Shown here: piece after piece, positions 2,838 to 19,930 of the stretch | Position numbering within the stretch: position 1 is the first letter of the stretch | Layout: each line of letters starts with the position of its first letter | Sequence record: OP752703.1 | DNA: 64,000 nucleotides | Direction: 5' to 3' (one strand) | The notes under the pieces: model-generated | Databases searched by the model: none | What the model was told of the DNA's origin: nothing | The model's input: only the letters and a program-made list of their open reading frames with translations | Made by a program: the position numbers and the translations under genes

Positions 2838-3326
2838 ATGGTTATTTCAGACGAACATTCCCGCCCTATCTTGATCGATAGCATCGATACACCAATTGCC
2901 ACAGACCATTTTTGGGTACTAGATTTGGTGAATAGGGACTTCATGTTGCAAGAATTGGTCATGTTGGAAGAGATTACAACTCCCGTACTCGCATTCAATG
3001 TAGACGGATACTTGATCGAAGCACCGGCAGATTGGAACATTCTAATCTATTCCCCGGATACTTCACAGATCGATATCATCGAAATTTCAGAGTTGAGCCG
3101 AGGTAACTTCTCGGCCTTCCTGATGGACCACAGATTGAACCGTGTAAACAAAAATGTAATCAATGTGATTGACTACAACCCTTGCGGGACTATTCACGTT
3201 CCAACAATGAATAAGAATTTCATGCTATGCCACACCGCAGGCCCCCATCATTGGGTTTGCATTTCACCCACTGACAATTACGTTAAGCTACTAAAAGATT
3301 GTGCAGTTGGTGACCTACTACCATAA
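2838..3326 (+). CDS. Hypothetical beta-rich protein
   Basis: 162-aa ORF directly after uvsW; no motif recognised with confidence. Confidence 0.75.
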   Translation: MVISDEHSRPILIDSIDTPIATDHFWVLDLVNRDFMLQELVMLEEITTPVLAFNVDGYLIEAPADWNILIYSPDTSQIDIIEISELSRGNFSAFLMDHRLNRVNKNVINVIDYNPCGTIHVPTMNKNFMLCHTAGPHHWVCISPTDNYVKLLKDCAVGDLLP

Positions 3327-3335
3327 GGAAACACA

Positions 3336-3803
3336 ATGACTGACACTACTAAGGCCAAAAAGAAGGCCACAACGTCCAAGGTCAAGAAGAAAGAAACTTG
3401 GACTATCTCTGAGCTACAGATGTGGTTCAGAACCGCCATCGATCTACAGGGCGATGACTGGTATCCAGACGAAGAGGTTTGGGGCAAGATTGTAGATATG
3501 GTTTTCAAACTAAAACCGGATGACCCGGTACGTCCATCCCAGCCACGACCGGCCCAACCGCCAGTACAGCAGCCAGTCTACGGAGGCTATAATCCGAACC
3601 AACATAATCGTTCATTGTCACCGCATAATGAATTGATTGTCGGTCATCCAATTCAAAGCGACGGCCTATCACTAGTCCCGCCAAGCACCGATCCAATTCC
3701 ACCGGGCGCTAACGATATTGAGGCGCTACGCCGACAGTCGGAAGCTGGTACACTAAACGGCGGAAAGACAATTAAGTCTGGACAGCTAAATCAGTACGAA
3801 TAA
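3336..3803 (+). CDS. Hypothetical protein (Lys-rich N-terminus, Pro/Gln-rich middle)
   Basis: ORF with TAAGGA RBS. Confidence 0.75.
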   Translation: MTDTTKAKKKATTSKVKKKETWTISELQMWFRTAIDLQGDDWYPDEEVWGKIVDMVFKLKPDDPVRPSQPRPAQPPVQQPVYGGYNPNQHNRSLSPHNELIVGHPIQSDGLSLVPPSTDPIPPGANDIEALRRQSEAGTLNGGKTIKSGQLNQYE

Positions 3804-3806
3804 CAT

Positions 3807-4358
3807 ATGAAGAATGGTGTAAGGCTTAACGGAAGAATCCTCTGGTTTGATGGGGATTCTTCTTTTGAATTAAATACTCTGTACGATTACGTACTCTCTG
3901 GCAAAACTCTTAACGACCAATGCTATGTGATGGAAGAATCCGAAGATGTAGCAAAGTTCAACGCCTTACAGAACCAAGTTCAGTTGGGCGTCAAGACCGA
4001 GCTAAAGGATATCTCAAATGATTGGGATATCCCTGATTATTACCTAAACCTAAACGTTGAAGAGTATATTCAGAAGAAGTTATTGGAAGAGATTGACATT
4101 AACGAAGAGCTAGATGAACTCGACATTGATGACCGAATTGATCGTGTAGACACAGAGCTAAAGCTGTTCGAGCATTATGGTATGACGAATATCCTTCGTA
4201 CTGCCATTTATATTGTAGAAACCTTTAAGCAAAAGAACGTCATATGGGGTACAGGTCGCGGAAGTTCATGCTGCTGTTATTGCCTATATCTTATTGAATT
4301 ACATGACGTAGATTCAGTACAGTTTGATTTAGACCTAACGGAATTTTTCCGTGGATAA
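3807..4358 (+). CDS. DnaE (Pol III alpha)-like fragment 1, the region preceding the catalytic motif
   Basis: WGTGRGSSCCCYCLYLIELHDVDSVQFDLDLTEFFR parallels DnaE [33 protein letters not shown]. Confidence 0.8.
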   Translation: MKNGVRLNGRILWFDGDSSFELNTLYDYVLSGKTLNDQCYVMEESEDVAKFNALQNQVQLGVKTELKDISNDWDIPDYYLNLNVEEYIQKKLLEEIDINEELDELDIDDRIDRVDTELKLFEHYGMTNILRTAIYIVETFKQKNVIWGTGRGSSCCCYCLYLIELHDVDSVQFDLDLTEFFRG

Positions 4359-4387
4359 ATAAAACACACTTAGGAAATTAAACTTAA

Positions 4388-4723
4388 ATGGCAACTAACA
4401 AACCAAGAACCGTAAAAAGCATGCGTGGTGAAGAAGTTAACTTCGACCTAGCAGAGATTAAGAATAAAATTCTGGCTGATCCAGAACCGGAAGCGAGCCG
4501 TCAGCGCGCACGTTTCATTGACAGCAAGCGTCGTAGAACCCGTAGACGCGGTGACGAGATTGTAGCTGAACAGAAGAATAATGAAGCCGCAGTACGTGCA
4601 GCTATCGCTGAACAGAAACGCGCTCAGATTCTTGAAGAGAAAGAATCGGTCCCTCACGTAAACGTTGATGAAGTAGTAGTTTCCGATGAAGCTCCGGTAA
4701 CGAGAAAAATTAAGAGAGACTAA
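4388..4723 (+). CDS. Hypothetical charged protein
   Basis: ORF with TAAATA late-type promoter at about 4356 and AGGA RBS. Confidence 0.75.
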   Translation: MATNKPRTVKSMRGEEVNFDLAEIKNKILADPEPEASRQRARFIDSKRRRTRRRGDEIVAEQKNNEAAVRAAIAEQKRAQILEEKESVPHVNVDEVVVSDEAPVTRKIKRD

Positions 4724-5035
4724 ATGGAAATTGAAGCATTAGGCGACAGTGTACTGTTTGACTTCGTTCAAACAATTAAAAAGGGTATGTTCCACCATGA
4801 CACCGATTGGGGTTTCACGTTGGACAAGAGCGTTGACTATGACGTAAGAAAGTCACGTTGGGGTCAGGTTGTATTTGCTGGTCCTGATGTTGAAAATGTA
4901 AAGGTTGACGATTACATCCTAATCGAAGGCGCTAAATGGACAAACGCCGTAGTAGTAAATGGCCGTAAGTTATGGCGAACCAAGGAAGATTTTATTGAAG
5001 CCATTTCGGACGAACGACCGGAAGCAATGAACTAA
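4724..5035 (+). CDS. GroES-like co-chaperonin
   Basis: IEALGDSVL...GQVVFAGPDVENVKVDDYIL pattern of Cpn10 / T4 gp31. Confidence 0.75.
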   Translation: MEIEALGDSVLFDFVQTIKKGMFHHDTDWGFTLDKSVDYDVRKSRWGQVVFAGPDVENVKVDDYILIEGAKWTNAVVVNGRKLWRTKEDFIEAISDERPEAMN

Positions 5036-5036
5036 A

Positions 5037-5858
5037 ATGATTTTTATTACGATACTGATTCTTGTCACTATCGCAATAGCGTCGGCCGCTGCATACTTCT
5101 CAGTGTATGGTTTGGCCCAATTGTTTACAGGGGCAGTAATCTCTGTAATCATTATGGGTGCATCCATCGAAGCTGGTAAGTTGATAGCGGCTTCGTTTTT
5201 GTATCGATACTGGCAAAAGATAGGGCTAGCCCTTAAAGCATATCTACTGAGTGCAATCTTTGTTCTAATGATTATTACTTCGATGGGTATCTTCGGATTC
5301 CTAACCGCAGCATATCAGAAGGACACTCTACCGATTGCAGAAATTGCTCAGAAGATTGAACTACTAGAACACGAACGTCAAGAGTTGATCGAACGTAGGG
5401 ACCGAATCGACAAGCAGGTTGAAAGTGTATCTGCTAATATGGTAAGGTCTAAGGAACGTCTAGCAAAGAGTTTCCAGACGGAACGAACCTCGATTGAAAC
5501 ACGCCTAGGTGAATTGACGCCTGAGCTACAGAAACTAAAGACGGATCAGATCAATGTTAAGGCAAAGGTCGGTCCTATTATGTTGGTAGCCGAAGTAATG
5601 GGACAAGACCCGAACAAAGCTGTATTCTGGTTCATCTTGATTCTAATCTCGGTCTTTGACCCTCTGGCTGTCGCTCTAACACTTGCCGTAAACATCGCCC
5701 TACGAATCCGTAAGGAAGAGAAGGAAGAGGCTATAAGGCTCGCTAAGGAAGAGCAAGAGAGAAAGGAAAGGGCAGAACTACCTGACCTTACAAATACTAA
5801 CAAAGCATCCCTAGATGCTTACATTAAAAAGATTGCTAAGGCGCAGCAATCCGAATAA
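5037..5858 (+). CDS. Membrane protein with several TM helices and a central coiled coil
   Basis: Three N-terminal hydrophobic segments, a coiled coil, and a C-terminal FDPLAVAL TM segment. Confidence 0.75.
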   Translation: MIFITILILVTIAIASAAAYFSVYGLAQLFTGAVISVIIMGASIEAGKLIAASFLYRYWQKIGLALKAYLLSAIFVLMIITSMGIFGFLTAAYQKDTLPIAEIAQKIELLEHERQELIERRDRIDKQVESVSANMVRSKERLAKSFQTERTSIETRLGELTPELQKLKTDQINVKAKVGPIMLVAEVMGQDPNKAVFWFILILISVFDPLAVALTLAVNIALRIRKEEKEEAIRLAKEEQERKERAELPDLTNTNKASLDAYIKKIAKAQQSE

Positions 5859-5862
5859 CTAC

Positions 5863-5891
5863 TTGATTTGGCCGTTGTGTATCGCTATAAT
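5863..5891 (+). promoter_or_regulatory. Sigma70-type promoter for the clamp loader operon
   Basis: TTGATT-N17-TATAAT. Confidence 0.7.
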
Positions 5892-5918
5892 GTGACCCAT
5901 CACATATAAGGATACACA

Positions 5919-6863
5919 ATGGCCAAATTAGTTTTAAACGAAAAGTATCGTCCTAAGAAGCTAGAGGACTACATTTTCGCTAACGATCTTACTCGCAGCG
6001 TAGTAAGCAAGTGGATCGAAGAGAAGAACATCCCTCACATCTTCATGCACGGTCATCAAGGCACCGGCAAGACCTCCCTAGCATATCTCCTAAAGAATGA
6101 ACTCGGTATTGATGATTCCGACTTCCTGCTAATTGACTCTTCCAGTGATGGTAATATCGCTACCCTACGTAATGATGTAGCGAACTTCATGGACACTATC
6201 CCTATGGGTGAGGCAAACCTAAAGATCGTTCTATTTGACGAAATTGACGGTATGTCCATTGCTGCTCAGAAGGCTCTCCGTGGATTCACCCAGCATCCTT
6301 CGACTCAGTACGTTCGATTCATTATGACCTGTAATAACCCGAATGCGGTTATCCCAGCCATCCACTCACGCGCACAGGAAATTCAGTTCAAGTCTCTCGA
6401 CAAGGACAGTATGCTAGAACGTCTGGCAGAAATTCTTGTAACCGAAGAAATTGAAACCGACCTAGACAACATGGAAGCTTACGTAGACCGCTTCTACCCT
6501 GACTTCCGTAAGCTTCTAGAAAGCGTTGACCAGTTCACTATCGATGGCAAACTAACCCCTGCTGACGAGATTGACGTAAGTGCGTCGGAAGACTTTGAGT
6601 TGGTTGTACTTGAAATCTTTGAAGAGAATAAGTACGACAATGCCGACATTCGTGAGGCTTTGAGTATGGTAATGTCCGATGCTGATTGGGACAATCTATA
6701 CAAATTCCTCTACGAGAATATGCACGAAATGGGTAAGTTCGCTGACAAGGATATGTGGGCTAGAGGTATTGTTGTCGTGGCCGACCACATGTATAAGCAT
6801 TCGCAGGTAGCTGTACCGGAATTGAATGCAACAGCTATGTTTGTAAGGTTGGGTCTGCTATGA
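5919..6863 (+). CDS. Clamp loader AAA+ ATPase subunit (gp44/RFC-like)
   Basis: EKYRPKKL, GHQGTGKT, LFDEIDG, AIHSR (SRC-like) motifs. Confidence 0.92.
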   Translation: MAKLVLNEKYRPKKLEDYIFANDLTRSVVSKWIEEKNIPHIFMHGHQGTGKTSLAYLLKNELGIDDSDFLLIDSSSDGNIATLRNDVANFMDTIPMGEANLKIVLFDEIDGMSIAAQKALRGFTQHPSTQYVRFIMTCNNPNAVIPAIHSRAQEIQFKSLDKDSMLERLAEILVTEEIETDLDNMEAYVDRFYPDFRKLLESVDQFTIDGKLTPADEIDVSASEDFELVVLEIFEENKYDNADIREALSMVMSDADWDNLYKFLYENMHEMGKFADKDMWARGIVVVADHMYKHSQVAVPELNATAMFVRLGLL

Positions 6864-7177
6864 TTGAAGTATTGACAGAAGAACAGAAAGAAAAAGACTT
6901 CAAGGCTATCTACGCAATTAAAGATAAGAACGAGAAGCTTTCTTGGACCCGTCGCCAGAAGAATCTAGAAGAGTTGATCGCTACTGAAATCAACCCTCTA
7001 GCTGAACAGATTCTAGCGTTGCAGATGCAGCAGCAGGATTTGATCGACAAGGCAATGGAAGCCCGAGAGAAAATGGTTAAGGAATGCATTCACCCGAAGG
7101 GATCATTGGTTCACTTCAACACGCATATCCTTTGTAAGTTCTGTAACCGTAAACTATCACGACCAAAGACAAAATGA
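6860..7177 (+). CDS. Hypothetical coiled-coil protein with C-terminal CxH...CxxC
   Basis: ECIHP...LCKFC; translationally coupled to its neighbours. Confidence 0.7.
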   Translation: MIEVLTEEQKEKDFKAIYAIKDKNEKLSWTRRQKNLEELIATEINPLAEQILALQMQQQDLIDKAMEAREKMVKECIHPKGSLVHFNTHILCKFCNRKLSRPKTK

Positions 7178-7647
7178 CCGACACCGAGAAGAAAGAACGA
7201 AAGCTGGATATGTTTGAAGTCCTCAAACAGATTGACGCTGGTAATCGAACTTTTCTAGATACTCTGGATGAAGATGCTAAGAAGGAATTCGTACCATTGT
7301 TGACGATGCGTTGGGCATCGTCAGCAGGCGGTATGCAGGCCGTCCTATTGAACGAGTTGGTAAACCCGATGGTATTCAAGGCTCACAACCACCCGGCCCT
7401 TCTATACAAGTTAATGGTAGCTTCTTCCAGTGGAAAGCAAAGGCGATACCGATGGCTGAAATCAAAGTCCAAGACTAAAGACAACAAGTTGACCATCAAA
7501 ACAATTGCAGGCTATTATAAATGTACCGCCAAGGATGCTGGTTACTACGCCAAGCGTCTACCTCTTGAAGATATTCTTGAAATGGCCGAAGCATTAGGTT
7601 ATGATTCCGACACTATTAAAGAACTAAAAGCTGAACACAAGAAATGA
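7174..7647 (+). CDS. Probable clamp loader small subunit (gp62-like)
   Basis: Helical protein with RWASS...LLNELVN and RRYRWLK, downstream of gp44-like gene. Confidence 0.6.
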   Translation: MTDTEKKERKLDMFEVLKQIDAGNRTFLDTLDEDAKKEFVPLLTMRWASSAGGMQAVLLNELVNPMVFKAHNHPALLYKLMVASSSGKQRRYRWLKSKSKTKDNKLTIKTIAGYYKCTAKDAGYYAKRLPLEDILEMAEALGYDSDTIKELKAEHKK

Positions 7648-8333
7648 CTGAGAATATCAAACCCTTTTACGAATGCGAATACTGTTTCAAGAAGCTGACC
7701 ACTCAGGCCAGACTTGACAAGCATAACTGCGAAGCAAAGAAGCGTGCAGACTACATGGCAACGAACAAGGGTAAGAGCGCATTCTACTGTTATGAAATGT
7801 GGAATTCACTTCGTGGATTCAAAGTTAATGGTGTAGAAACCTTTATGGACTCGAAATATTTCAAGTCCATTGAGCGTTTTATTAAGTTCTGCAACAGCAC
7901 TGGTATTCCAGATCGTAAGCATTACATTGAATACATGATTTCAAAGGAAGTAATGCCATTCAATTGGACTAATCCTGAAATCTATGATGAATACATCCAG
8001 CACTTTGATAACACGAAAACGCCAGAGGAAATGGCTAGAATCAGCATGGACACCCTATTCGATCTTGCAGACCTATTTGATTGTGAGATTAGTGAGGTTC
8101 TAAGTCACATGTACGCATCTGACCTGATGAAGCTCGTAGTAGCCCGTAAACTAAGCCCATGGATTCTACTGCCAAGTAAATCCTTCAAGAATTACATGAG
8201 AACGGAAGTTACTGCGGAACAGACAGTGTTGATTAACTCAACGATCAATTATGACATTTGGGGACGAAAGTTTCGAGAGAATCCAGAGGCCGTACAACAG
8301 ATGAAAGAAATCGTTAAGGAAATGGATTTCTAA
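7644..8333 (+). CDS. Hypothetical protein with N-terminal C2HC zinc finger
   Basis: YECEYCFKKLTTQARLDKHNC. Confidence 0.75.
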   Translation: MTENIKPFYECEYCFKKLTTQARLDKHNCEAKKRADYMATNKGKSAFYCYEMWNSLRGFKVNGVETFMDSKYFKSIERFIKFCNSTGIPDRKHYIEYMISKEVMPFNWTNPEIYDEYIQHFDNTKTPEEMARISMDTLFDLADLFDCEISEVLSHMYASDLMKLVVARKLSPWILLPSKSFKNYMRTEVTAEQTVLINSTINYDIWGRKFRENPEAVQQMKEIVKEMDF

Positions 8334-8337
8334 GTCA

Positions 8338-8363
8338 TAAATAGAGGGATCAAGTATCCCTCT
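8338..8363 (+). promoter_or_regulatory. Late-type promoter (TAAATA) abutting a hairpin, heading the virion paralogue array
   Basis: TAAATA 8338-8343; AGAGGGAT-caagt-ATCCCTCT 8343-8363. Confidence 0.55.
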
Positions 8364-8368
8364 AATAA

Positions 8369-9640
8369 ATGTCAAATTACACTTCCCGCTATCAGATTTT
8401 TTATACTGATAAAGATAAGACCCCAATTAGCGTCCCGCGTTCGTTAGTAGTAACTGACGCGGGCGATATTGTATTCATTGGTAAGAACCGTAAAGAATAC
8501 GGTGAGGTATTCAATACCAACGTTCTACATTTACTAGAACACTTCGCTTGTCCAGAAGGCAGCGATGGAATGCCAGACTACAATACTGTCATTAAACCAA
8601 CACTACGTAATCCCACGGTGGGACAAATTTGGTTTAATAAAACTAAAAAGTCTCCTTTCCTTTGGAACGGAACTAAGTGGGTATCCTTTGCTTCTCGTAA
8701 CCGAACTATCGGCGGAAACAATGGTGTACTCTATAATGGAAATCAAATTCCAGCCCCTCTTTCCAACATCAATGGAACACTAACCCCAATGCCTTACAGT
8801 GATTGTGCATGGACGGTATCTCCGTTCGGCATGACGGCTGCTACGCGCCTAACATATCTTGAATGTTACACTGACAAGGATGCATGGGTAACTATGCGTT
8901 ACATGGTTCAAGGCTCGCTAGAATTGGTAGAAGGTTATGCTAACTATCAGATCATTGGTGTAGGTGGATCAAATGAATGGAATGGTGGAAACAATGGTGT
9001 TCCTCCGTCAACCCCAAACATTCCGGGCTTGACTCCAACCCCATCAGTCACACGTTCAGGTACTCCGCAGCCAACCGCCCCGGTAACCCCGTCCGTCACG
9101 CCAACTATTACACGTACTCCGGGTATGACCCGCAGCCTGACCCCAACGCCAACGGCAAGCCGTACAGAAACGCCTGTACCGTCCGTCACGCGCACTCAGA
9201 CGCCTACCCCATCACCGACCCCAACGATTACTCCGACTGTTTCTCCGAGCGTCCCACCGCCGATCTGGATCAACATCTTCGATCAAAAGACGGTGAAGGA
9301 CGTTGCAGTAGGAACCGATTACTCATTGAACTATCGTATCACCGAAGCCGGTTTGATTATCATCTACGATAATTACGGTTTGAGTATTCCTAGCCAGTGG
9401 ATTTATAACGACAGTCCGGTTAATTATTCCATTAGGGTAAGTAATGTTGTCGGAGAACCACTAACTGGATTCGTAGATGATTGGCTGAATACGGGCGTTC
9501 AGAGAACATGGGGTATTGTAACTACAAATACTACTGCCGTTGGAACCTATACGGTTACCTTCTTGGTTGAAATTATGAGAAACGGCGATCAGCAGATCAT
9601 GGACCGTTGCAATATTACTCTGCAAATCAACGTGATTTGA
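8369..9640 (+). CDS. Virion/fibre-like paralogue 1 (shared N-domain, S/T/P stalk, beta-rich tip)
   Basis: YGE...LLEHFACPE...GQIWFN...CAWTVSP...ANYQIIG domain followed by TPTPSVT repeats. Confidence 0.8.
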   Translation: MSNYTSRYQIFYTDKDKTPISVPRSLVVTDAGDIVFIGKNRKEYGEVFNTNVLHLLEHFACPEGSDGMPDYNTVIKPTLRNPTVGQIWFNKTKKSPFLWNGTKWVSFASRNRTIGGNNGVLYNGNQIPAPLSNINGTLTPMPYSDCAWTVSPFGMTAATRLTYLECYTDKDAWVTMRYMVQGSLELVEGYANYQIIGVGGSNEWNGGNNGVPPSTPNIPGLTPTPSVTRSGTPQPTAPVTPSVTPTITRTPGMTRSLTPTPTASRTETPVPSVTRTQTPTPSPTPTITPTVSPSVPPPIWINIFDQKTVKDVAVGTDYSLNYRITEAGLIIIYDNYGLSIPSQWIYNDSPVNYSIRVSNVVGEPLTGFVDDWLNTGVQRTWGIVTTNTTAVGTYTVTFLVEIMRNGDQQIMDRCNITLQINVI

Positions 9641-9671
9641 GATAATAAATACACAGGATTAAGGATTTAAA

Positions 9672-11978
9672 ATGGCAAATTGCGCAGATTTTAGTTACAC
9701 CATTTACTATACAAATCAGGATAAGGGTACTATCCAGATTCAGAAGTCGGAGCTAAACACTACGACTCTTGACATTGCCCTTATTGGTAAGATTCGTCTA
9801 GAGTATGGTGAAATTTTCAATGAAAATATTCTCCACTTGTTGGAGAACTTTGCTGCTCCTGCTCTTCCGTCAGAAGACAAGCCGGATACCAGCAAGACTT
9901 TCAACGCTATTCTAAGTAACCCAACGGCAGGACAGGTGTGGTACAATACCACAGCTAACCGTCCATTCGTATATGGTAGTGATGGTGTTTGGAGAACATT
10001 TGGTAGCCTAGATGACGTAGCCGGTAACTCCGGGGTAATCATGGGCGACGGTAATAATGCTCTACCTATTCCAGTTTCTCAGGATGGTTACAACTTTAGT
10101 CTAGCTGAATGTAGTTGGAGCGTTTCACCATTCCACTTCCCTGATGAAGTTGACTTCCTACAATGTTATGTTAAGGAGGATGGTACTGTAGTTTCTGAGT
10201 ATCGCCTAGAAGGTTCATTGAATCTTATCAAGGGATTTGCCAACTATCAGATTCTAGCCATTAAGGGTAATACCAACTATGGTAATATTGATTCGGATAA
10301 CTGCGCACCGGGACCGCTACCGTCGATTACTCCGACCCCAACAATGACGCCAACCCCGTCAAACACTTCTCCGGTAACTCCGACGCCAACCATTACTCCA
10401 TCAGTAACGGTTTCTCAGACTGCGGATATTACCCCAACAGTAACACGTTCAGTAACTCCGTCAGTATCGGTTTCAGCTACTCCGTCACCGACACCGCCGT
10501 CAACTCCGACTGCTACGGTAACTCCGACCATTTCATTGACGCCTTCAACGTCATTGACTCCATCGGTAACCCCAACTATTTCAGTAACTCCATCCGTTAC
10601 GCCTTCAACTGCGTTTAATAATGGTGACGTATTCGCCGTGGCCTTCCGTCCATTCTCACTAGACGCTGGTACAGAGGCTATGTACGACCGTAAGATGGAT
10701 ATGAATTGGGGTACATTCAATTCTACCTACAGCTACACCACTAACTACTTCCCTGTAGCTAATGGTTCTGCTCCTGTAGAATCTCGTATTGGTACAATGA
10801 TGCGTGACTGGTATATTCAAGTCGCCTCTCCTGTAATCTATGGTTATGGTGTGAACTTAGGCGTCGGTGTATACCCGGCTGCTGCTCTATCATTTGAAGG
10901 ACAGTTGAACCAGCCTGTCTCCTTGACTGCTGACAACATTTTGGCTTATGTTGGTTTCATTAATAATTCTGATGCAGCAAATGTACTGTCAACTATCCAG
11001 ACCTTCACATTTGATGGCGTAACTTTCCAACAGACTCTAAAGACTGCCACCTTGACCAATCAGAATATCGATGATATGTTCAGAATTGATGAAAATCTAA
11101 TTCTGGTCAAGAGTCATTTGATTCTAAACGGCGAAGAAAAGGGAACTGCATTCGGCGTATATCGCAACGAACCAACAGGTCTAAATCTAGTTGGTGCGCC
11201 AGTAACTTATGTCGATTATATCGAAGCCGTTGCTGTAACCAACCAGAACCATATTGCTATTGTTGATACCAATAATGAACTAACTCATTACGTATATGAT
11301 GCGACTAATGGTTTGAATGCCGTAAGCACTCTAGACCTATCAACTCTAACTACCACGCCTATCAATGCCATCAAGTATGACAAGGATAGCTTGAATCTAT
11401 ACGTAATGTATGCAGTTGATGCGAATACTACTGGATTCCGTCAGATCAATACAAGTGCAACAACCTATACACTAGGTACTTCCATTACTCTGCCAATCGT
11501 AGCTGAAATGGAACTATGCTCTTCGATTGACGTATTCAATGACCGTGTTCTATACTTGGATATTACTGATCCTGCGGCAAAGCTAATGAAGACCTTAACC
11601 CACTTCGGTGGAGCTTTCAGTCAGACCGGTTCTATTGCACAAATTCCAACAGGCCGTGATCCACAGTCTGTATCGTTCATCGTGCCTAACCTACCGCGTC
11701 CAAGCTTCACGCCAACGCCGTCAGTAACTCCGTCACATACTCCAACACCGAGTTCGACACCGCCAGTAACACCAAGCACAACTCCACCGTCTACTCCACC
11801 GAGTACGCCGCCTAATACTCCACCGAGTACGCCGCCAGTAACGCCAAGCTCTACTCCCGCAGCGTCATCGGAACCACCAATTGGCTGTAATTGTGAAGAA
11901 TATGGTCCCGGTTGTTATGATACAGGAGGCGGATGCCAGTGTCCGGGTGAAGAGTTTGAACGCCCGTGTAACCTATAA
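9672..11978 (+). CDS. Virion/fibre-like paralogue 2 (two stalks, propeller-like middle, 6-Cys C-terminal module)
   Basis: Shared LLENFA domain; repeated beta-strand region; ends GCNCEEYGPGCYDTGGGCQCPGEEFERPCNL. Confidence 0.8.
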   Translation: MANCADFSYTIYYTNQDKGTIQIQKSELNTTTLDIALIGKIRLEYGEIFNENILHLLENFAAPALPSEDKPDTSKTFNAILSNPTAGQVWYNTTANRPFVYGSDGVWRTFGSLDDVAGNSGVIMGDGNNALPIPVSQDGYNFSLAECSWSVSPFHFPDEVDFLQCYVKEDGTVVSEYRLEGSLNLIKGFANYQILAIKGNTNYGNIDSDNCAPGPLPSITPTPTMTPTPSNTSPVTPTPTITPSVTVSQTADITPTVTRSVTPSVSVSATPSPTPPSTPTATVTPTISLTPSTSLTPSVTPTISVTPSVTPSTAFNNGDVFAVAFRPFSLDAGTEAMYDRKMDMNWGTFNSTYSYTTNYFPVANGSAPVESRIGTMMRDWYIQVASPVIYGYGVNLGVGVYPAAALSFEGQLNQPVSLTADNILAYVGFINNSDAANVLSTIQTFTFDGVTFQQTLKTATLTNQNIDDMFRIDENLILVKSHLILNGEEKGTAFGVYRNEPTGLNLVGAPVTYVDYIEAVAVTNQNHIAIVDTNNELTHYVYDATNGLNAVSTLDLSTLTTTPINAIKYDKDSLNLYVMYAVDANTTGFRQINTSATTYTLGTSITLPIVAEMELCSSIDVFNDRVLYLDITDPAAKLMKTLTHFGGAFSQTGSIAQIPTGRDPQSVSFIVPNLPRPSFTPTPSVTPSHTPTPSSTPPVTPSTTPPSTPPSTPPNTPPSTPPVTPSSTPAASSEPPIGCNCEEYGPGCYDTGGGCQCPGEEFERPCNL

Positions 11979-11986
11979 GGTATTAA

Positions 11987-13267
11987 ATGACAACGTATAC
12001 AATTCGTAAAACCGATATAAATGAACCTACAATCACTGTCCCGCAAGAGACAGTGATTCGCGGTGTCGTGGACTTGCCTATTATAGGTCAATTTAAAACT
12101 GATTATGGTACTGAGGTAAACCAGAGTCTATTAAATCTTCTAGAAAACTTTGCTTGCCCCGAAGCACCGGGAGCGACAGATGATGATGATGCTGTTCCTG
12201 ATCTTTCTAAAACTTCTGATGACCAGCTAGGAAATCCTACGGCTGGACAGTTGTGGTACAACAGTACCCGTGAGAAGATTTATTATTGGGATGGTACTAC
12301 ATGGGCTGCTGCTCCTATTCGCAATCAATATGCTGCGAATTGGGGACGTGCATTACACGGTCAGTATCTTCCAAAGCCAGTAGCTAGAGACGGTAGAGTT
12401 TTTGAATACAGTGAATGTATCTGGTCAGTATCACCGGCAGTATTCTCTGCGGCAATTGATACTTTCAACTGTAACACCGATCAAAATGCTAAGGTAACTG
12501 TGCAGCAGCGTTATGCAGGCCGTGAAGGTCTAGTTAACAGTGTAGCAAACTATTTGATTATCGGTATCGACAACAACGTTAATAATGGGCGTTGGGATAT
12601 TGTCACACCTATTCAAGTATCCCCTACACCATCTCCGACTGCATCGGTAACGCCAACCGTAACTGCAACTGTAACTCCTTCGGTTACTACTTCGGTAACG
12701 CCATCCATTTCTCCAACGCAGACGCCAACACAGACGCCTTCGAGAACTCCGGCTGTAACTCCGTCGAATACACCGCCAGTTACTCCACCGGCAACACCTA
12801 CACCTACTCCGTCCAATACAGTGGTGACATATTGCTGGACCTCTGGTCAGTTGTGTCTAGGTTTCTTGGGCGATAATAATGGTACTCCTGATTTCCGTAG
12901 ATTCTGGAAAGATAATACTTCTGGACAACCAACCCCGGATTCGTGTGCATACAATACTACTTACCATAGCGCTTTTGGCCTCATTTATTATAGTTATCCG
13001 GTGCGTTTCCTAACTCTAGCAGCCTCGGTCCCGATAACTATTACTGCTTCAAATGGAGCGCAAAATAGTCAGAATATAATTTTCAATACTACAAAGTCTC
13101 CGAGTGAAAATTATTTTCAGGAAACTGTCACAAGAACGCTTAATGTTGGCGGCGTAGACGTACCTATTCAGGCACTAATGACTTGGAATAAGCGCGCAGG
13201 TAATAGTAATGCCGCAGACGGTACTTTAACGGTACAACTTTCATTCCCTAACGGGGGTAGATGCTAA
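11987..13267 (+). CDS. Virion/fibre-like paralogue 3
   Basis: LLENFACPE...GQLWYN...ECIWSVSP domain, S/T/P stalk, unique tip. Confidence 0.8.
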
Positions 13268-14370
13268 TGGCTTCATTTTACACAGTACATCGAACTGATA
13301 TTTCGGCACCTTCAATTGAAGTGCCGAAGTTTTCACGTAACACTACAGACCTTGGTATTACCTTAACTGGTAAGATCAACCGTGAGTATGGTGAAGAACT
13401 TGACCAAGCGTATTTGAACGTATTGGAAAACTTCGCTTGCCCGGAAGATTCTAATAATCCCGGCAACCCTGATTTGTCTAAGACTTCTCAGGAGCAGTTG
13501 AGTCGCCCTACTATAGGTCAACTTTGGTATAATAGTTCAAAGGAAAAGATTTTCTTCTGGACTGGAACAATCTGGACTGGAACAGCAAACCGTGGTGAGT
13601 ACGCTGCCAATTGGGGTAGAATCTATTCTGGTGAACAACTACCAAAGCCGGTTAATCCTGTGACTGGTAGAGTATTTGAATATAGTGAATGTATTTGGTC
13701 AGTATCTCCTGCTGCCTTCCTAGGTAAGCCGGGCTACTTGGCATGTTCAACGGATTCCGATGCCAAAGTAACCATGCGCTATCGTTATTCAGGAACCAAT
13801 AACATCATCGGTAATCCTTCGGACAATCCAGAAGTACATGGTATTGCGAACTTCTTGATTATTGGCATTCCGGGTGTTGTTGAGCATGATTATGGTGTAT
13901 CCCCGCCAGAACCGTCATCTACGTCAACTCCTACTCCAACACCGACGCCTTCGACAACGCCAAGTTCAACGGTAACTCCGACTCCTACTGCATCAGTTAC
14001 TCCTACAACTACGCAGTCCTTGTCGCCGACACCGACGCCTGCTCCGTCGAATTCTGCAACGCCTGCTCCATCGTCTACGCCGACAATGACACCTTCGAGT
14101 ACACCGGCCTCAACACCGCCAGTTACTCCGTCACCAACACCAGCCGGTCGATTCGATTGGGTATTGACTAACTCATGGGCTGGTCAGGAAAATCATGGTT
14201 GCCGACCAGACGATTTGGACACTGGACAAGCTCTGGACCAAGCTAATGCCTACTTCCAGCAATATCCATGTGATATGGAAAGCTTAGGTGCATACTATCA
14301 AGTAAATTGGTGTGACCCCGGTAGCCCAACCTCAATCGGTGTATATGGTTGGGAATGTATGATTATATAA
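13261..14370 (+). CDS. Virion/fibre-like paralogue 4 (short 4-Cys tip)
   Basis: Same N-domain; stalk; tip ending YGWECMII. Confidence 0.8.
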
Positions 14371-14385
14371 GATATAAATATCCAC

Positions 14386-15429
14386 ATGAATGAATATATC
14401 GTAAGTCATACCGACCCAACCGAAAAACCGATAGTAATTGAAGAAGCAGAGACAGCGAAAGCTGGCTCTGCTCTTACTCTGTTGGGCAGAATTAAACCTG
14501 AGTATGGCGAGATTCTAGATCAAGACTTCTTGAATCTTCTAGAGAACTTTGCATGCCCCGAGAGTCCAGACTCTATTGACATTAGAACTTCTTGGCCTGA
14601 TCTTTCACAGACTAGTGATAATCAGTTAGAGAAGCCTATCCTAGGTCAGCTATGGTATAACTCTACTAGAGAACTTCCTTACAGTTGGGATGGTACTCGC
14701 TGGAATCCTATTGCGCTTCGTGAAAACCTAGCAGCAAATTGGGGACAAGTATATCATGGCGCACAACTTCCAAAGCCTGTCAGCCCGCTAACAGGTCAAG
14801 AGTTTGATTATGAAGACTGCATCTGGTCAGTAGCTCCTGCAAGCTTTGTAGGTAAGCCGGGTTATATGGCCTGTGCAACGGATGACCAAGCTGTAGTAAC
14901 TATGAAGTATCGTTTGGCGGGAACCAATACCATTATCAGTGGTATTGCCAACTATTTGATTATTGGTATTAAGGGTAACTACAATATCGGAACTATCATT
15001 CCGCCGATTGAGATTACTCCATCGACAACGCCAACGGCTACACCAACGCCAACTCCGTCATTGACCCCATCGATCACTGCATCTATTACAGCTTCGATTA
15101 CACCGTCTCCGACACTTTCGTTGACACCAACGCCAACACCGTTGCCATCTAACTCCGCAACACCGGCTGTATCTCAGACAGCGTTCCCAACGCCGACTCC
15201 GACCAACACGCCATCGTCAACGCCACCGGCAAGACCGTATTACCAGATGACCAGCGAGCGTTGCACTTACCACCCTAATTGGGAAGTTATATATGGATGC
15301 CCGGAAGAACCGTCTAACTATAACTGTCAAACCGTTGCGGATATTGGTAATAGACAAACAACTACTTCTGACTGTTATTCTGGTAATGGCGTTTTGCGCT
15401 GTGTCCGACAGTGGGAATGCAGACTATAA
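14386..15429 (+). CDS. Virion/fibre-like paralogue 5 (short 6-Cys tip)
   Basis: Same N-domain; stalk; tip ending RQWECRL. Confidence 0.8.
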   Translation: MNEYIVSHTDPTEKPIVIEEAETAKAGSALTLLGRIKPEYGEILDQDFLNLLENFACPESPDSIDIRTSWPDLSQTSDNQLEKPILGQLWYNSTRELPYSWDGTRWNPIALRENLAANWGQVYHGAQLPKPVSPLTGQEFDYEDCIWSVAPASFVGKPGYMACATDDQAVVTMKYRLAGTNTIISGIANYLIIGIKGNYNIGTIIPPIEITPSTTPTATPTPTPSLTPSITASITASITPSPTLSLTPTPTPLPSNSATPAVSQTAFPTPTPTNTPSSTPPARPYYQMTSERCTYHPNWEVIYGCPEEPSNYNCQTVADIGNRQTTTSDCYSGNGVLRCVRQWECRL

Positions 15430-15453
15430 ATATTGAACTAGACAAAGATTATT

Positions 15454-17046
15454 ATGACTGAGTATATCGTTAAATTTACCGACAAGTCGAAGACCCCTAT
15501 TACCGTCTATGAAAATAGTATTGATAATTCTTCGACTGACATTTCACTTCCGGGCCGAAAGAAGCTAGAATATGGACGCGATCTTAACGCGAACTTCCTG
15601 CACATTCTAGAAAACTTCGCGTGTCCAGAAGACCCGGAAAATCCGGGTTTCCCTGATTTCGAGAAGGCTTCATTCCAGTCTGATACTAATAAGAAGCTCC
15701 TAACCGCTCCGGTCGAAGGTCAATTATGGTTTAACTTGACCCAAGAAACTCTATTCGTATGGAATGGATCGGCATGGCTTGCTCTTGGTATGGATGGAGA
15801 TATTGCATCCAATTGGGGTGTCCTAACTGACGGCATGCAGATTCCACGTCCTAAGAACAAGTACGGATATACTTTCAAGTATGAAGAATGTGCATGGATC
15901 GTTTCACCATTTAAGTTGGAAGGCTCTTTCCGTTATATGCAGTGTACCACTGACGATAATGGTTGGGTAACTATGACTTACACCCCTGAATCACCCAATG
16001 CCGCTCCTATCAAGGGCTGCGCCACTTACATGATTGTAGGTATTAAGGGTAACGTAAACTTGGGTCAACAGGAAGGTATTCCTGATGCTACTCCAATTCC
16101 GTCACCAACCCCAACCCCAACTCCTTCGATTACAAAGTCTGCACAACCAACACCAACCGCGTCGGTAACTCCTACTCCGTGGGTATCTGCTACTCAGACT
16201 CCACAGCCGACTCCATCAGCCACACCCCCTCCATCAGCCTCGCCAACTCCAACCCCGATCAATTATATTGCATCGATTTCGGCAAGTCCGGCAGGGCAGG
16301 TAGCACCGGGTGCTAATATTTGTTATACTATTAGCTTGAACTATCCTGCACCGGCAGCGGGTAAGGATGTTCGTCTGATCCGTTCAGGTGATACGTCTAA
16401 TATCTGTGCGTCCACCGAAGGAGAAACAGTTGGTCCGATTATCAGTGACGAAACAATTCAATTCAGTGCAGGACAGCTATCTACACAGATTTGTCGTACT
16501 GCACCGGCTGCTCCACCACCGCCACCAACTCCTACGGCTACACCGCGTTATGCATGTAAGCAAGTAGCTGCCGATGGTAACGTATGGGGTGCAACATATT
16601 GGACTGGATTCATGTGTCAGACTAATAATGGTGGTCCGCAAGATTACTTTACAAATACTTCGGGTGGTAGTGGTAACTATTATCCATGTACTCAGTGGAC
16701 TGCATGTAATAATGCTACTTCATTCTCTTCAACTCAAACGATTGCAAACAATCCAGTAAGAGGAAATAGAGTATATTACAACGCAGTACCAGCAGCACAG
16801 TTAGTAATGCAGATTCAGATTCCGGGTGTAGCTTCTTCTAATGTATTCAACACTTACATTTATGGTACAACTCCACAGACTCAGACACACATTTTGACTG
16901 CTGGTAGCCGTACCTTCACTCTAGTAATCAATATGAATCCAGTTCTAGTAAGTACCAGCGGCTCCAACAAAACTTGGACCATCTACACTGACTACACGGT
17001 AACTGACAATCAGACTGGCGTAGTAACTGCCTTCTGTAACATTTAA
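15454..17046 (+). CDS. Virion/fibre-like paralogue 6 (Ig-like middle and beta-rich tip)
   Basis: Same N-domain ([10 protein letters not shown]); stalk; [10 protein letters not shown] Ig-like segment; poly-Pro linker. Confidence 0.8.
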
Positions 17047-17056
17047 GGAAATATTA

Positions 17057-17557
17057 ATGGCTATCGTATGTAACTCAATCGTCCCGCCTCTCTCGGTATC
17101 ACTACCGGGAGGCTGCACAGGATTCCAGCAGAATGATACCTACCCATCAGCGTGTGGTGCAGGTACGTCTTCTGCAACGTGTAATCTTAACATTAGCGGT
17201 GGCGTTCCACCGTATAATACCAGCTTCTCCTACATTCAGACTCCGAACATCGTTCAATTCTGTACCCTAAACGCTGCGGCATTCACTGGCGGCGGTGGTA
17301 CTAATCCAGCATTCGGATTTGCATTCAGTGGAAGTAACATGTGTAACATTTTCATTAGAGGCATTCTGCAAGTAGCTTATACTGTAACTGACTCTTCGGG
17401 TCAACGTGTAGATGGTAATGCTCAGTACGATGTTCATGTGGAACGTTCAGTCGCATCTGCTGGCTGTGATTGTTCAGCTTATGGACCACGTTGTTATGAC
17501 GTAGGTGGTGCTTGCCGATGTGCCGGTCAAGAATACGATCTACCTTGTTACTTGTAA
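17057..17557 (+). CDS. Cys-rich virion-associated protein sharing the 6-Cys C-terminal module of 9672..11978
   Basis: Ends GCDCSAYGPRCYDVGGACRCAGQEYDLPCYL; lacks the shared N-domain. Confidence 0.75.
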   Translation: MAIVCNSIVPPLSVSLPGGCTGFQQNDTYPSACGAGTSSATCNLNISGGVPPYNTSFSYIQTPNIVQFCTLNAAAFTGGGGTNPAFGFAFSGSNMCNIFIRGILQVAYTVTDSSGQRVDGNAQYDVHVERSVASAGCDCSAYGPRCYDVGGACRCAGQEYDLPCYL

Positions 17558-17563
17558 AAACAC

Positions 17564-17601
17564 AAAGCCCTTTCATGATCTAAATAATCTGAAAGGGCTT
17601 T
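17564..17601 (+). terminator. Hairpin with a TAAATA late promoter in its loop
   Basis: AAAGCCCTTTCA-tgatcTAAATAatc-TGAAAGGGCTTT. Confidence 0.7.
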
Positions 17602-17605
17602 TTAA

Positions 17606-17773
17606 ATGTATATCTTTGTAAGAAAATCAGATAGAATGATCGTTGGTTACGCAAACCGTCCCGTAAGTGAAGAGGATATGGAGCGTCAGGGTAACTTGGT
17701 TTTTCAGGTTGACAAGTCGGAGTTTTCCGATACAATGTTAGGTCAAACCTTGGAAGACTTTGATATCAAATGA
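17606..17773 (+). CDS. Small hypothetical protein (55 aa, not in the ORF track)
   Basis: MYIFVRKSDRMIVGYANRPVSEEDMERQGNLVFQVDKSEFSDTMLGQTLEDFDIK*; stop overlaps the next ATG (ATGA). Confidence 0.6.
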   Translation: MYIFVRKSDRMIVGYANRPVSEEDMERQGNLVFQVDKSEFSDTMLGQTLEDFDIK

Positions 17774-18438
17774 AACGTATCACTAATCTACAAACTGGTA
17801 AAAATGCTGAATACATTCAGCGCCAGTGGATTCATGTTGGGGCAATCCGTGACCGACTTATCTCTGCCACTGAGTGGACTCAGAACGGAGATAATCTACT
17901 AACTCTTGAATCATATATCTTGTGGTCTGATTGGCGACGTAAGGTCTATGATGTTTCTGAGGCAACGTATTCTTCTCCCGAAGAAGCTGAGGCAGCACTA
18001 AATGTGTTGAATGATTCTAAGCCTCTAACCGTTAACACTTCTACCGTAATGCGACAAAAGAAGTATCGACTTGATCTATCTTCTATTGATGCTGCAAAGC
18101 GAGACGGTAAACGAATCGTTAGAGAATTCCTAAATGATTATATTGAAAATTCATTACCGGAAAGTATTAACATCATCAACCTAAAGTATCAGAGTTACTT
18201 ACTATGGAAGGATTCTGGTATGGATCACTTCCTACATTTCCCTATCTTGCAGACGCATAAGGAAATGGAAGACTTGGATATCAATGAAACTATTGACGAT
18301 ATCCTAAGCACTTACAAGACTGCTACTGAACTAGTGGCTAATCAGATTAAAATCAGCAAACAGATAGAGTGTGAAATTGAAGACGCTCCTAATCTTAAAA
18401 CTATTATTGCAATTGTAAAGAAAATGCACGGCTATTGA
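17770..18438 (+). CDS. Tail-fibre assembly chaperone-like protein
   Basis: IRDRLISATEWTQNGDNLL...WSDWRRKVYDV resembles the R..LL..SDWTQ..D...W..YRQ.LRD tail assembly chaperone motif; follows the fibre array. Confidence 0.55.
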   Translation: MKRITNLQTGKNAEYIQRQWIHVGAIRDRLISATEWTQNGDNLLTLESYILWSDWRRKVYDVSEATYSSPEEAEAALNVLNDSKPLTVNTSTVMRQKKYRLDLSSIDAAKRDGKRIVREFLNDYIENSLPESINIINLKYQSYLLWKDSGMDHFLHFPILQTHKEMEDLDINETIDDILSTYKTATELVANQIKISKQIECEIEDAPNLKTIIAIVKKMHGY

Positions 18439-18452
18439 CCGTGCATTTTTCA
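18421..18452 (+). terminator. Intrinsic terminator
   Basis: AAAATGCACGG-ctattga-CCGTGCATTTT(T). Confidence 0.7.
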
Positions 18453-18469
18453 TTTGGTATCCTATAGAA

Positions 18470-19060
18470 ATGGATATTGATATTGACTTAAGTAGTAAAT
18501 TTAAATCTAAAGCCCTGTTCCCCAATGCCCCTAGGGCGTCCCGTGTGGAGAACGGAGAGCTAGAAGAACACCTTGTCGGCCTGTACTTCCAGAAAGTCCC
18601 TGTGGACCCTGTGACGGGCCTTACAGCCATTCCTTTCAAAGACACAGACGCTCATGGAATCTTTAAGATTGACATGCTCCCATCAGTCTTACTAGGAAAC
18701 TTCACGGCTATAGAAGACAAACAGCAAATTAGAGAATTAACAAAGATTCCTCCTGACTGGACTCTTCTTGAAGATGAAAGTATTGTGGAGAAGTTGTTCC
18801 AGATTTCCAAACATGCCGAACTAATCACCAGAGTAAAGCCGAAGTCAATCTCAGAATTAGCAGATTGTTTAGCGCTGATTCGCCCGGAGAAGAGGCATTT
18901 GGTCAATAAATATATTGCTAACCGTAAAGACCCTGAGCTATTGAAGGAGCTTTACATTAAAGATGGTAAGGGTGCATACAGAAAGTCGCACGCCATTCCA
19001 TACGCTATGCTTATTGTTATTGAATTACATCTGATTAAGGAAGGATTGTATGAAGTTTGA
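18470..19060 (+). CDS. DnaE (Pol III alpha)-like fragment 2 carrying the catalytic aspartates
   Basis: Starts MDIDIDL (DnaE PDxDxD); FKIDML (K.DFL); LFQI...KPKSISELADCLALIRP; YRKSHAIPYA (FNKSHAAAYA). Confidence 0.8.
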   Translation: MDIDIDLSSKFKSKALFPNAPRASRVENGELEEHLVGLYFQKVPVDPVTGLTAIPFKDTDAHGIFKIDMLPSVLLGNFTAIEDKQQIRELTKIPPDWTLLEDESIVEKLFQISKHAELITRVKPKSISELADCLALIRPEKRHLVNKYIANRKDPELLKELYIKDGKGAYRKSHAIPYAMLIVIELHLIKEGLYEV

Positions 19061-19421
19061 ATTGTTTCAAAACATTATGGAGCAGACTAATGCTGCCCAA
19101 GCTCGTTTGACTGACACGCAGAAGCTAGTTCTGGTTAATGTATATGCCGCAGCTACGCCAGAAATGGCCTACGACACTGTTGCTGGCGCACCTAACACGG
19201 TGGCTGCACGTAATCAGCTTCGCTCCGCAGGATTGATCGTAGTAGACGATCAGAACTCTAGGGCTGGCGTAACCGATCAAGGACAGGAAGCGTTGGTGAA
19301 CAACAACCTGATTGATGAATCCGGCCAGCTTACGGAAGAAGGAAATAACTTGCTACAAAATACACAGCAAGATAAGAGAATGTTTACCAATGAAGGCTAT
19401 AAGATTATCGACAAGCTTTAA
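19050..19421 (+). CDS. Hypothetical protein, possibly winged-helix-like
   Basis: ORF coupled to the DnaE fragment; 'LRSAGLIVVD..RAGVTDQGQEAL' pattern. Confidence 0.7.
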   Translation: MKFELFQNIMEQTNAAQARLTDTQKLVLVNVYAAATPEMAYDTVAGAPNTVAARNQLRSAGLIVVDDQNSRAGVTDQGQEALVNNNLIDESGQLTEEGNNLLQNTQQDKRMFTNEGYKIIDKL

Positions 19422-19930
19422 AGTTTGTTGAGAGTCTTATTGACGTATTCAATGTTATCTGGAATTGGCTTACGCTTTTTGCGTTTGCTTTTGATAACAC
19501 CGCCCATTTTATATGTCGGAAGGGGACCGATTACGCGAGTAACGAATTCTGTAGGATAAGCTCGGATAAGTGGAGCAACTACACCGGCTAGACCTAGGCG
19601 GGAGAATTCGATAGAGAGAGGGTGGGACTTATGACGTTCTGAGTAGAACCAGTCTTCGGCGATTTTGACGACTGCCATTTCATCAATGGAGTTTGGACTG
19701 CATAGGTCCAGTACGTAACCGACGATCTGTTTATTGTGTACGTTATCGACAATTACAAGCACATTGTCATTATTGTACCTAATCAGAGTAATAAAGGGAT
19801 ACCCTGTATACCCCTCGGGGTGAGGTTCGGTAATAAGAGGAATTGATTGAGTCTTTCGCATTATAGTCAACTTTAGTTTCTTATAAGTATTTATGGACCC
19901 AAAATGCTCTTGTATAATACAATGTAGCAT
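19418..19930 (-). CDS. Hypothetical protein (true start may be about 19863, MRKTQS)
   Basis: ORF; minus-strand TAAATA near 19890. Confidence 0.7.
   Translation of the reverse strand: MLHCIIQEHFGSINTYKKLKLTIMRKTQSIPLITEPHPEGYTGYPFITLIRYNNDNVLVIVDNVHNKQIVGYVLDLCSPNSIDEMAVVKIAEDWFYSERHKSHPLSIEFSRLGLAGVVAPLIRAYPTEFVTRVIGPLPTYKMGGVIKSKRKKRKPIPDNIEYVNKTLNKL

Follow-up and report, generated by a model that had tools for sequence, protein, structure and literature searches.

Two open reading frames (ORFs) of Stenotrophomonas phage RAS14, each annotated in the phage record as 'hypothetical protein', are two parts of a DNA polymerase core like that of the alpha subunit of bacterial DNA polymerase III (Pol III alpha). 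They lie in a stretch of 64,000 nucleotides (nt), called the window here; this 64-kb window corresponds to positions ~186001-250000 of record OP752703.1. Phage CM1 is identical over this stretch, and the closest relatives of RAS14 and CM1 are the Xanthomonas jumbo phages XacN1 and Xoo-sp13. The first ORF (window positions 3807..4358, + strand, 183 aa) is referred to as the N-half and the second (18470..19060, + strand, 196 aa) as the C-half. Both had been picked out in a first-pass annotation made from the sequence alone, and both are present as described there. Together they amount to 379 aa, in line with the ~380 aa given then, and they are separated by 14,111 nt on the same strand, an arrangement also seen in XacN1. 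The proposal that they form a stripped-down C-family polymerase core of the Pol-beta fold agrees with Pfam, PHROG, sequence matches in the PDB and Foldseek searches with AlphaFold models. The families phrog_11127 and phrog_11778, both labelled 'DNA polymerase', cover the N-half (E 1.8e-45) and the C-half (E 4.1e-58) from end to end, and matches of this quality to dedicated families place the polymerase assignment far beyond chance. The observation is thus confirmed.

What does each half contribute? Residues 100-180 of the N-half correspond to positions 13-93 of the 260 in PF07733 (DNA_pol3_alpha, E 7.7e-9, over the gathering score). In a phmmer search residues 53-180 align with E. coli Pol III alpha 256-391, and a profile of the N-half matches residues 285-392 of the same protein at E 8e-5. 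Homologue sets comprised 98 N-half and 120 C-half cluster representatives, the latter being the 120 listed of 404 found. The AlphaFold2 model of the N-half, built on its 98 homologues, has a mean predicted local distance difference test score (pLDDT) of 93 and shows a small alpha/beta domain (approximately residues 1-75), after which come three long helices and the palm's nucleotide-binding loop. C-family polymerases account for 14 of its 15 best Foldseek matches in the PDB. The loop is the glycine/serine-rich WGTGRGSS (residues 147-154; 4245..4268, + strand), in which W147, G148, G150, R151, G152, S153 and S154 are invariant among the homologues. The protein ends with ...DLTEFFRG; DnaE homology reaches residue 180 of 183, and three residues remain after it.

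The C-half matches PF17657 (DNA_pol3_finger, E 3.3e-5, over the gathering score). Its AlphaFold2 model (mean pLDDT 89, built on the 120 homologues) shows a five-stranded sheet, the beta-sheet of the palm, and then a helical remnant of the fingers. The top 17 Foldseek matches in the PDB are all Pol III alpha, DnaE1 or PolC, with E. coli, Thermus and Mycobacterium among the C-family matches, and the best ten have query-normalised template-modelling (TM) scores of 0.48-0.58 at a probability of 1.0. Straight after the start codon comes the metal-binding aspartate strand D2-I-D4-I-D6 (18473..18487, + strand), which a profile alignment places on residues 463-467 of Thermus aquaticus Pol III alpha, D2 on 463 and D4 on 465. 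In the same kind of alignment D68, part of K66-I-D68 (18665..18673, + strand) and assigned as the third catalytic aspartate, falls on T. aquaticus residue 618, which we take to correspond to E. coli D555. A fingers helix, K172-S-H174-A-I-P-Y178-A (18983..19006, + strand), aligns weakly and locally with E. coli 758-765 and puts S173-H174 on S759-H760. [quoted passage not shown] Invariant positions in the 120 homologues are D2, D4, D6, K66, D68, R138, P139, K141, H174 and Y178. The first-pass annotation had located all three catalytic aspartates in the second fragment and had made its reading depend on their conservation; D2, D4 and D68 are there and never vary. The motifs on which it had drawn can be read in the protein as the MDIDIDL start, FKIDML, LFQI, IRPEK and RKSHAIPYA. 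The assignment of D2/D4, D68 and H174 is accepted because the alignments are collinear, fit the fold matches and concern residues that never vary. With the nucleotide-binding loop on the N-half and the metal ligands and sugar gate on the C-half, the active site would be composite.

What has been lost relative to the bacterial enzymes? D4 and D68 are 64 residues apart in the C-half versus ~150 between their counterparts in Thermus, so the thumb is missing, and the C-half ends ~15 residues past the steric-gate helix. The fingers domain is cut to ~110 aa. As stated in the first-pass annotation for PHP and OB, a Pfam scan of both ORFs gave no match to PHP, helix-hairpin-helix or OB domains. PF02811 (PHP) is absent from the neighbouring ORFs as well, in a scan in which control phage DnaE proteins match this family at E 1e-40 or better. 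No DnaE-like piece other than the two halves was found in the window by tblastn with three phage DnaE-type polymerases or by Pfam. Against the NCBIfam DnaE/PolC models the N-half scores 16-31 bits, with cut-offs of 434-1806, and the C-half gives no match. With PHP, thumb and C-terminal domains absent and scores far under the curated cut-offs, the mini-enzyme is outside the bacterial DnaE/PolC equivalogs. Bacterial Pol III alpha (DnaE1; E. coli 2HNH/5FKV, T. aquaticus 2HPI/3E0D) and PolC have in common with it the palm fold, the nucleotide-binding loop, the three catalytic aspartates and the fingers helix with its steric-gate histidine. They are, however, single chains of ~1,100-1,400 aa, and the PHP, thumb-sized insert, clamp-binding, helix-hairpin-helix, OB and tau-binding parts that they carry are all wanting in the two-chain phage protein. 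C-family polymerases are the bacterial replicases, normally large and multi-domain, and a 379-residue, two-chain version shows how little may suffice.

The cut falls at one and the same place. Each of the 98 N-half clusters is a stand-alone protein of 176-201 aa, and stand-alone too are all C-half clusters among the matches listed (120 of 404), at 186-201 aa. Nearly every C-half opens M-D-I-D-I-D, with the aspartate motif directly after the initiator methionine, and nearly every N-half terminates at one common short motif. The best 150 representatives from an exhaustive C-half profile search divide into 102 full-size stand-alone proteins, 45 shorter fragments and 3 proteins longer than 300 aa. 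Homologues span phages of gamma-, beta- and alpha-proteobacteria. Could the halves be joined after transcription or translation? Joining by an intein or intron was considered and rejected, as homology reaches both ORF ends and the spacing is 4-224 kb with variable order; the stretch after the N-half stop codon holds no aspartate motif. Split-intein halves of the cyanobacterial DnaE type were not encountered either: in the N-half DnaE homology continues up to residue 180 of 183, in the C-half it is present from residue 2 onwards, and given the usual sizes of intein halves this leaves no room for intein segments.

The two halves also travel together. A tblastn search gives 99 phage records for the N-half and 96 for the C-half, and the N-half/C-half counts per genus are 34/34 for Escherichia, 11/11 for Pseudomonas, 8/8 for Erwinia, 8/8 for Salmonella, 4/4 for Xanthomonas, 4/4 for Yersinia and 10/11 for Klebsiella; both are shared by the same ~95 phage genomes. 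Among the relatives of RAS14, the pair is present in XacN1, RaK2, 121Q, GAP32, PA5oct and Atu_ph07. Four surplus N-half records are Clostridium phages, of which the one inspected, CS266P4, has a full-size DnaE. Two Alishewanella phages first seen with a C-half only do have an N-half in a profile search. In the orthologue table of the XacN1 paper, ORF245 (N-half) and ORF228 (C-half) have identical presence and absence across ten phages. Co-occurrence, a check set by the first-pass annotation, therefore holds genome by genome in both tblastn and this table. In five representative N-half/C-half pairs the longest contig is equally long for both halves. The genes lie at widely varying distances from each other: RsoM2USA has them 4.2 kb apart, Slicko01 11 kb, RAS14, XacN1 and Xoo-sp13 14-15 kb, RaK2 (with the C-half upstream) 34 kb, PA5oct 44 kb, Atu_ph07 182 kb and Phosso 224 kb. 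Alishewanella phage Slicko01 carries the pair (L004, 620-1132 and 11971-12582) in a genome of 141 kb, so the split mini-polymerase is not restricted to jumbo genomes.

Nature also offers single-chain versions. Three metagenomic proteins combine both halves: P0297 (375 aa; gene at L007 1066-2193) has the N-half, a linker of some ten residues and then the C-half, P0347 (336 aa; L008 3171-4181) consists of the C-half preceded by the N-half's palm part, and P0364 (398 aa; L009 871-2067) is permuted, with the C-half in front of the N-half palm part. Two are thus N-then-C and one is C-then-N. By Rosetta-stone reasoning, such fusions are evidence that both halves function as a single enzyme. A PF03090 'Replicase' gene lies upstream of the gene for P0347 and overlaps it, and the gene for P0364 stands ahead of an AAA_25 helicase-like gene; judged by these family matches, the neighbours of the fused forms place the enzyme beside priming and unwinding functions. 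A search seeded with P0347 returned split C-halves and no further fused form, which indicates that the fused forms are rare.

Is such an enzyme new? Iyer et al. 2021 (Viruses 13:63; PMC7824862) described a 'minimal, split DNA polymerase III alpha' of the group 2.2 jumbo phages, suggested that it serves to synthesise one strand or to repair DNA, reported a family B polymerase across the whole group and proposed the minimal split enzyme as a model of the ancestral form. Their system consists of an N-terminal nucleoside triphosphate-binding protein and a C-terminal metal- and template-binding protein, encoded by distant genes alongside a family B polymerase. RAS14 shows the same features: an N-protein of ~180 aa and a C-protein of ~190 aa at separate loci, together with a family B polymerase and a T4-type replisome. 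Nothing essential differs, and RAS14 is a further member that had been annotated as 'hypothetical'. As a class, the split minimal enzyme was thus on record before, and RAS14 adds one more example. Added beyond that work are the member in a 141-kb phage, the single-chain and permuted forms outside jumbo phages, the clade-specific insertion between the halves and the split of CS266P4 DnaE in the same loop. The XacN1 homologue was annotated as 'DNA polymerase III alpha subunit' in 2018, and RefSeq as well as PHROG label both halves 'DNA polymerase'; the guess made in the first-pass annotation, that related phages might already carry such labels without a demonstrated function, was correct. A literature search found no experimental study of the split enzyme and nothing on it beyond Iyer et al. 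2021. For RAS14 the gain is in annotation, since two 'hypothetical proteins' can now be named as two subunits.

The genomic setting is that of replication. In the window the order is a UvsW-type helicase gene (1247..2809, + strand; Pfam ResIII, Helicase_C and UvsW_N), which is the upstream neighbour of the N-half in the same replication module, the N-half itself, three small ORFs, and the gp44-like and gp62-like clamp-loader genes. The latter occupy 5919..7647 (+ strand), with the gp44-like AAA+ large subunit at 5919..6863, a small ORF, and the gp62-like small subunit at 7174..7647, recognised through Pfam AAA, DNA_pol3_delta2 and Gp44_lid and through phrog_225 ('clamp loader'). Next is a conserved gene of phrog_11058 (7644..8333, + strand), whose homologue is the immediate upstream neighbour of the C-half in RsoM2USA and in RaK2 lies a short way upstream of it, and whose XacN1 orthologue, ORF238, shares the phyletic pattern of both halves. 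Neither this ORF nor ORF 5037..5858 has a match in Pfam, NCBIfam or PDB sequences or a PHROG function. ORF 5037..5858 occupies the position of gene 45, the sliding clamp of T4, in the polymerase/clamp-loader module. The most compact version of the module is found in RsoM2USA, where the N-half, the homologues of the ORFs at 4388, 4724 and 5037, the gp44-like and gp62-like genes, the homologue of the ORF at 7644 and the C-half all fit within 4.2 kb. RaK2 has it in two parts. The first extends from the N-half to gp44, with the N-half 1 kb upstream, and the second from UvsW via the homologue of the ORF at 7644 to the C-half, which stands between UvsW and gp61/gp41.

What, then, fills the gap between the halves in RAS14? 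The first-pass annotation had placed a fibre array there, a label that the analysis does not confirm: apart from the clamp-loader genes, the interval holds six paralogues of PHROG 15511. This phrog_15511 block (8369..18438, + strand) comprises the six paralogues in tandem (8369..17046), with a common N-terminal module of ~280 aa and differing C-terminal parts, and three small ORFs. The authors of the XacN1 paper neither observed tail fibres nor detected homologues of them, and the only fibre-like signals between the RAS14 halves are weak matches of ORF 17770..18438. The block is not between the halves in RsoM2USA, and phrog_15511 reaches six copies per genome only in RAS14, CM1, XacN1 and Xoo-sp13; on this comparison the block is a clade-specific insertion into the polymerase/clamp-loader module, which explains the 14-kb gap. 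A terminator-like hairpin with a 12-bp stem and a T run (18420..18450, + strand), the best such site in 1..20000, stops 19 nt before the C-half start codon and divides the C-half from the paralogue block. A sigma-70-like promoter match (18435..18463) overlaps the hairpin and would leave almost no leader. Downstream of the C-half, at a distance of 2.3 kb, is a stand-alone DnaQ/epsilon-like 3'-5' exonuclease gene (21367..21969, + strand; Pfam RNase_T PF00929, E 1.6e-7), which the NCBIfam epsilon and PolC-exonuclease models match below their cut-offs; in RaK2 an exonuclease gene lies ~5 kb upstream of the C-half. This DnaQ-like protein could be a proofreading partner of the mini-polymerase, though the usual docking domain, PHP, is absent.

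How might the enzyme work, and for what purpose? The reading that we prefer, at a rough probability of 65% for the whole statement, is that of a heterodimeric minimal C-family polymerase with a composite active site, selective for deoxynucleoside triphosphates (dNTPs), short-range, and accessory to the T4-type replisome. The homology and the joint action of the two chains deserve more confidence than this, the specific role less. The N-half would supply the helical part of the palm and the glycine/serine-rich loop that holds the phosphates of the incoming nucleotide, and the C-half the beta-sheet with the metal-binding D2, D4 and D68 together with the shortened fingers and their steric-gate H174, so that the active site would be complete only once both chains associate. 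The match of the invariant H174 to E. coli H760 points to dNTP use and selectivity. Because PHP, thumb, clamp-binding, helix-hairpin-helix and OB parts are absent, the enzyme alone is expected to be short-range and devoid of proofreading. What the data show is the homology, the fold, the conserved catalytic residues, the fixed place of the cut, the co-occurrence, the replication genes nearby, the natural fused forms and the separate family B polymerase; that the chains associate and are catalytic, that they use dNTPs and that the enzyme is accessory is what we infer. As to the last, RAS14 encodes a full-length family B polymerase of 882 aa outside the window (record positions 98718-101363), 68% identical to XacN1 ORF343, itself an 882-aa family B polymerase including an exonuclease domain (PF00136, PF03104). 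The presence of this complete enzyme elsewhere in the genome points to an accessory role for the mini-enzyme. It also bears out the earlier statement that the pair is not the replicase, as the UvsW, clamp-loader and DnaG-type primase genes, all in the window, bear out the statement that the replication genes are T4-like. The mini-enzyme would work beside this replisome (family B polymerase, clamp loader, primase and UvsW), most likely in short-patch synthesis, that is primer extension, gap filling or repair. The whole jumbo-phage group would then run bacterial-type and eukaryote-type polymerases side by side. A comparable case is a minimal X-family polymerase, with only the nucleotidyltransferase fold and fingers, that serves repair in a large DNA virus (PMC11646218). 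It too combines a Pol-beta-fold palm with fingers and, in a large viral genome, plays an accessory part beside a replicase of family B, but it belongs to family X, not C, and is a single chain, so the likeness is functional only.

Several points weigh against this reading. The local alignments behind D2/D4, D68 and H174 are individually weak, with domain scores of 0-10 bits, and each fused form is known from one metagenomic contig. The hairpin in front of the C-half puts the halves in different transcription units in RAS14, which makes their co-expression an assumption. In an enzyme without thumb or duplex-binding domains the holding of primer-template DNA is unaccounted for, no clamp-binding motif was identified in it, and PHROG, NCBIfam and PDB sequence searches recognised no sliding clamp in the window. 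Nor did the literature yield a two-chain model, a complex or an activity report.

Could the pair instead be a non-templated nucleotidyltransferase, adding tails to DNA or RNA ends or making a nucleotide signal? A core fold with reduced fingers and without thumb and duplex-binding domains would suit such an activity, and end-modification chemistry is present in the window in the form of RNA-repair (Hen1, Pnkp-like) and NAD-salvage genes. However, the part of the fingers that has been retained is the one that faces the incoming dNTP in Pol III alpha, and its steric-gate histidine is invariant. The structural neighbours are templated C-family polymerases, with no CCA-adding enzyme, poly(A) polymerase or cyclic-nucleotide synthase among them, and the genes sit with those of the replisome and not with those for RNA repair. 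We consider this explanation unlikely.

Alternatively, the halves may act separately, for example as non-catalytic, polymerase-derived adaptors of the replisome. Genes that are 4 to 224 kb apart in an order that varies by lineage, separate transcription units in RAS14 and proteins that each fold confidently alone in AlphaFold would all be compatible with this. Invariant aspartates and a nucleotide-binding loop would be unexpected of adaptors, though, and neither the near-perfect co-occurrence nor the single-chain forms in both orders would be easy to understand; separate action is therefore quite improbable.

Is the mini-enzyme the main replicative polymerase of the phage after all? Its genes belong to the clamp-loader module, the place where T4 has its polymerase gene, and the small metagenomic element L008 holds the fused form and a Rep/primase gene with no other polymerase on 8 kb. 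What makes this very unlikely is the complete family B polymerase with its exonuclease domain, found in RAS14 and all relatives examined and reported group-wide by Iyer et al., set against a mini-enzyme that has neither proofreading nor processivity domains. Finally, small fragments of a normally 1,100-aa protein, annotated as 'hypothetical protein' in RAS14, might look like decaying remnants of a broken dnaE, a view refuted by the conservation pattern, in which hundreds of homologues keep the same lengths, boundaries and invariant catalytic residues.

Within the preferred reading of a two-chain accessory polymerase, a narrower role can be imagined, which we regard as speculative and would not ourselves bet on. 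Rather than a polymerase for general repair, the enzyme may be a starter polymerase coupled to the primase, extending primers by a few nucleotides and handing them over to the clamp-bound family B polymerase in the manner of Pol alpha or DnaE3, and its ancestor may have been the self-contained replicase of small Rep-primase elements such as L008. DnaE3 of Bacillus-type replisomes extends RNA primers before PolC takes over. It is likewise a second, short-range polymerase of the C family, and such a function fits the primase and helicase neighbours of the mini-enzyme genes. DnaE3 differs in being one full-length chain that binds the clamp, and the partner taking over from the mini-enzyme would be of family B. 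If this were true, the replisome of jumbo phages would contain two polymerases, one of bacterial and one of archaeo-eukaryotic type.

How did the gene come to be split? Clostridium phage CS266P4 (OP172778, genes 00014 / HNH / 00016; L011 3029-6597) offers a possible explanation. Here an HNH endonuclease gene interrupts a DnaE of full size: the first piece has PHP and the first part of the palm, an HNH_3 gene follows, and the second piece has the rest of the palm, the fingers and helix-hairpin-helix. The cut falls between PF07733 positions 102 and 103, and the second piece opens M-D-I-D-V-D. In RAS14 the N-half stops at approximately PF07733 position 96 and the C-half opens at the aspartates. 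Both proteins are thus cut in the loop just before the aspartate motif, with a second piece starting M-D-I-D-x-D; unlike the mini-enzyme, CS266P4 DnaE consists of full-size, adjacent pieces with the endonuclease gene still between them. In Dulem virus 36 (L012 2915-6811) a LAGLIDADG gene cuts a DnaE-type gene between fingers and helix-hairpin-helix. Taken together, the two cases indicate that homing endonucleases break phage dnaE genes into working pieces. A group I intron was considered as the cause of the CS266P4 split and rejected, since a search of the interval against Rfam gave no intron at E up to 0.1. Around the RAS14 halves, no HNH or LAGLIDADG match was found in the flanking ORFs with Pfam and PHROG. 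'Genes in pieces' of this kind, split by free-standing homing endonucleases, occur in T4-like phages, the ribonucleotide reductase of Aeromonas phage Aeh1 being an example. There an essential enzyme is cut in a conserved catalytic region and works through chains that reassemble; the enzyme is a different one and the pieces are adjacent. By analogy with these cases, the split in jumbo phages probably goes back to a 'gene in pieces' made by a homing endonuclease at the DNA of the catalytic motif, with genome rearrangement afterwards. In the RAS14/XacN1 clade the 10-kb paralogue block was inserted between the halves later.

Some minor observations concern the phrog_15511 paralogues and the rest of the window. 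The family is confined to the clade of RAS14, CM1, XacN1 and Xoo-sp13. A short piece of phrog_15511 (profile positions ~198-273) recurs in ORFs of 1514 aa (43305..47852) and 903 aa (58876..61587), and the RAS14 label 'D-alanyl-D-alanine carboxypeptidase' on 14386..15429 is without Pfam support. The T4-type late-promoter octamer TATAAATA is present at 14373..14380 and 15425..15432, just upstream of two of the paralogues in the array; the motif has four copies in the window, no more than chance. NAD (nicotinamide adenine dinucleotide) salvage is represented by a fusion of nicotinamide mononucleotide adenylyltransferase and Nudix (25474..26601) and by nicotinamide phosphoribosyltransferase (32265..33674). 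RNA repair is represented by a Hen1 methyltransferase and Pnkp-ligase-like pair (36480..39096). Both functions, NAD salvage and RNA repair, have been described for this phage group. Further replication genes are those for a two-subunit topoisomerase II (50891..54086), an NAD-dependent DNA ligase with BRCT (54752..56659) and the DnaG-type primase (57494..58570).

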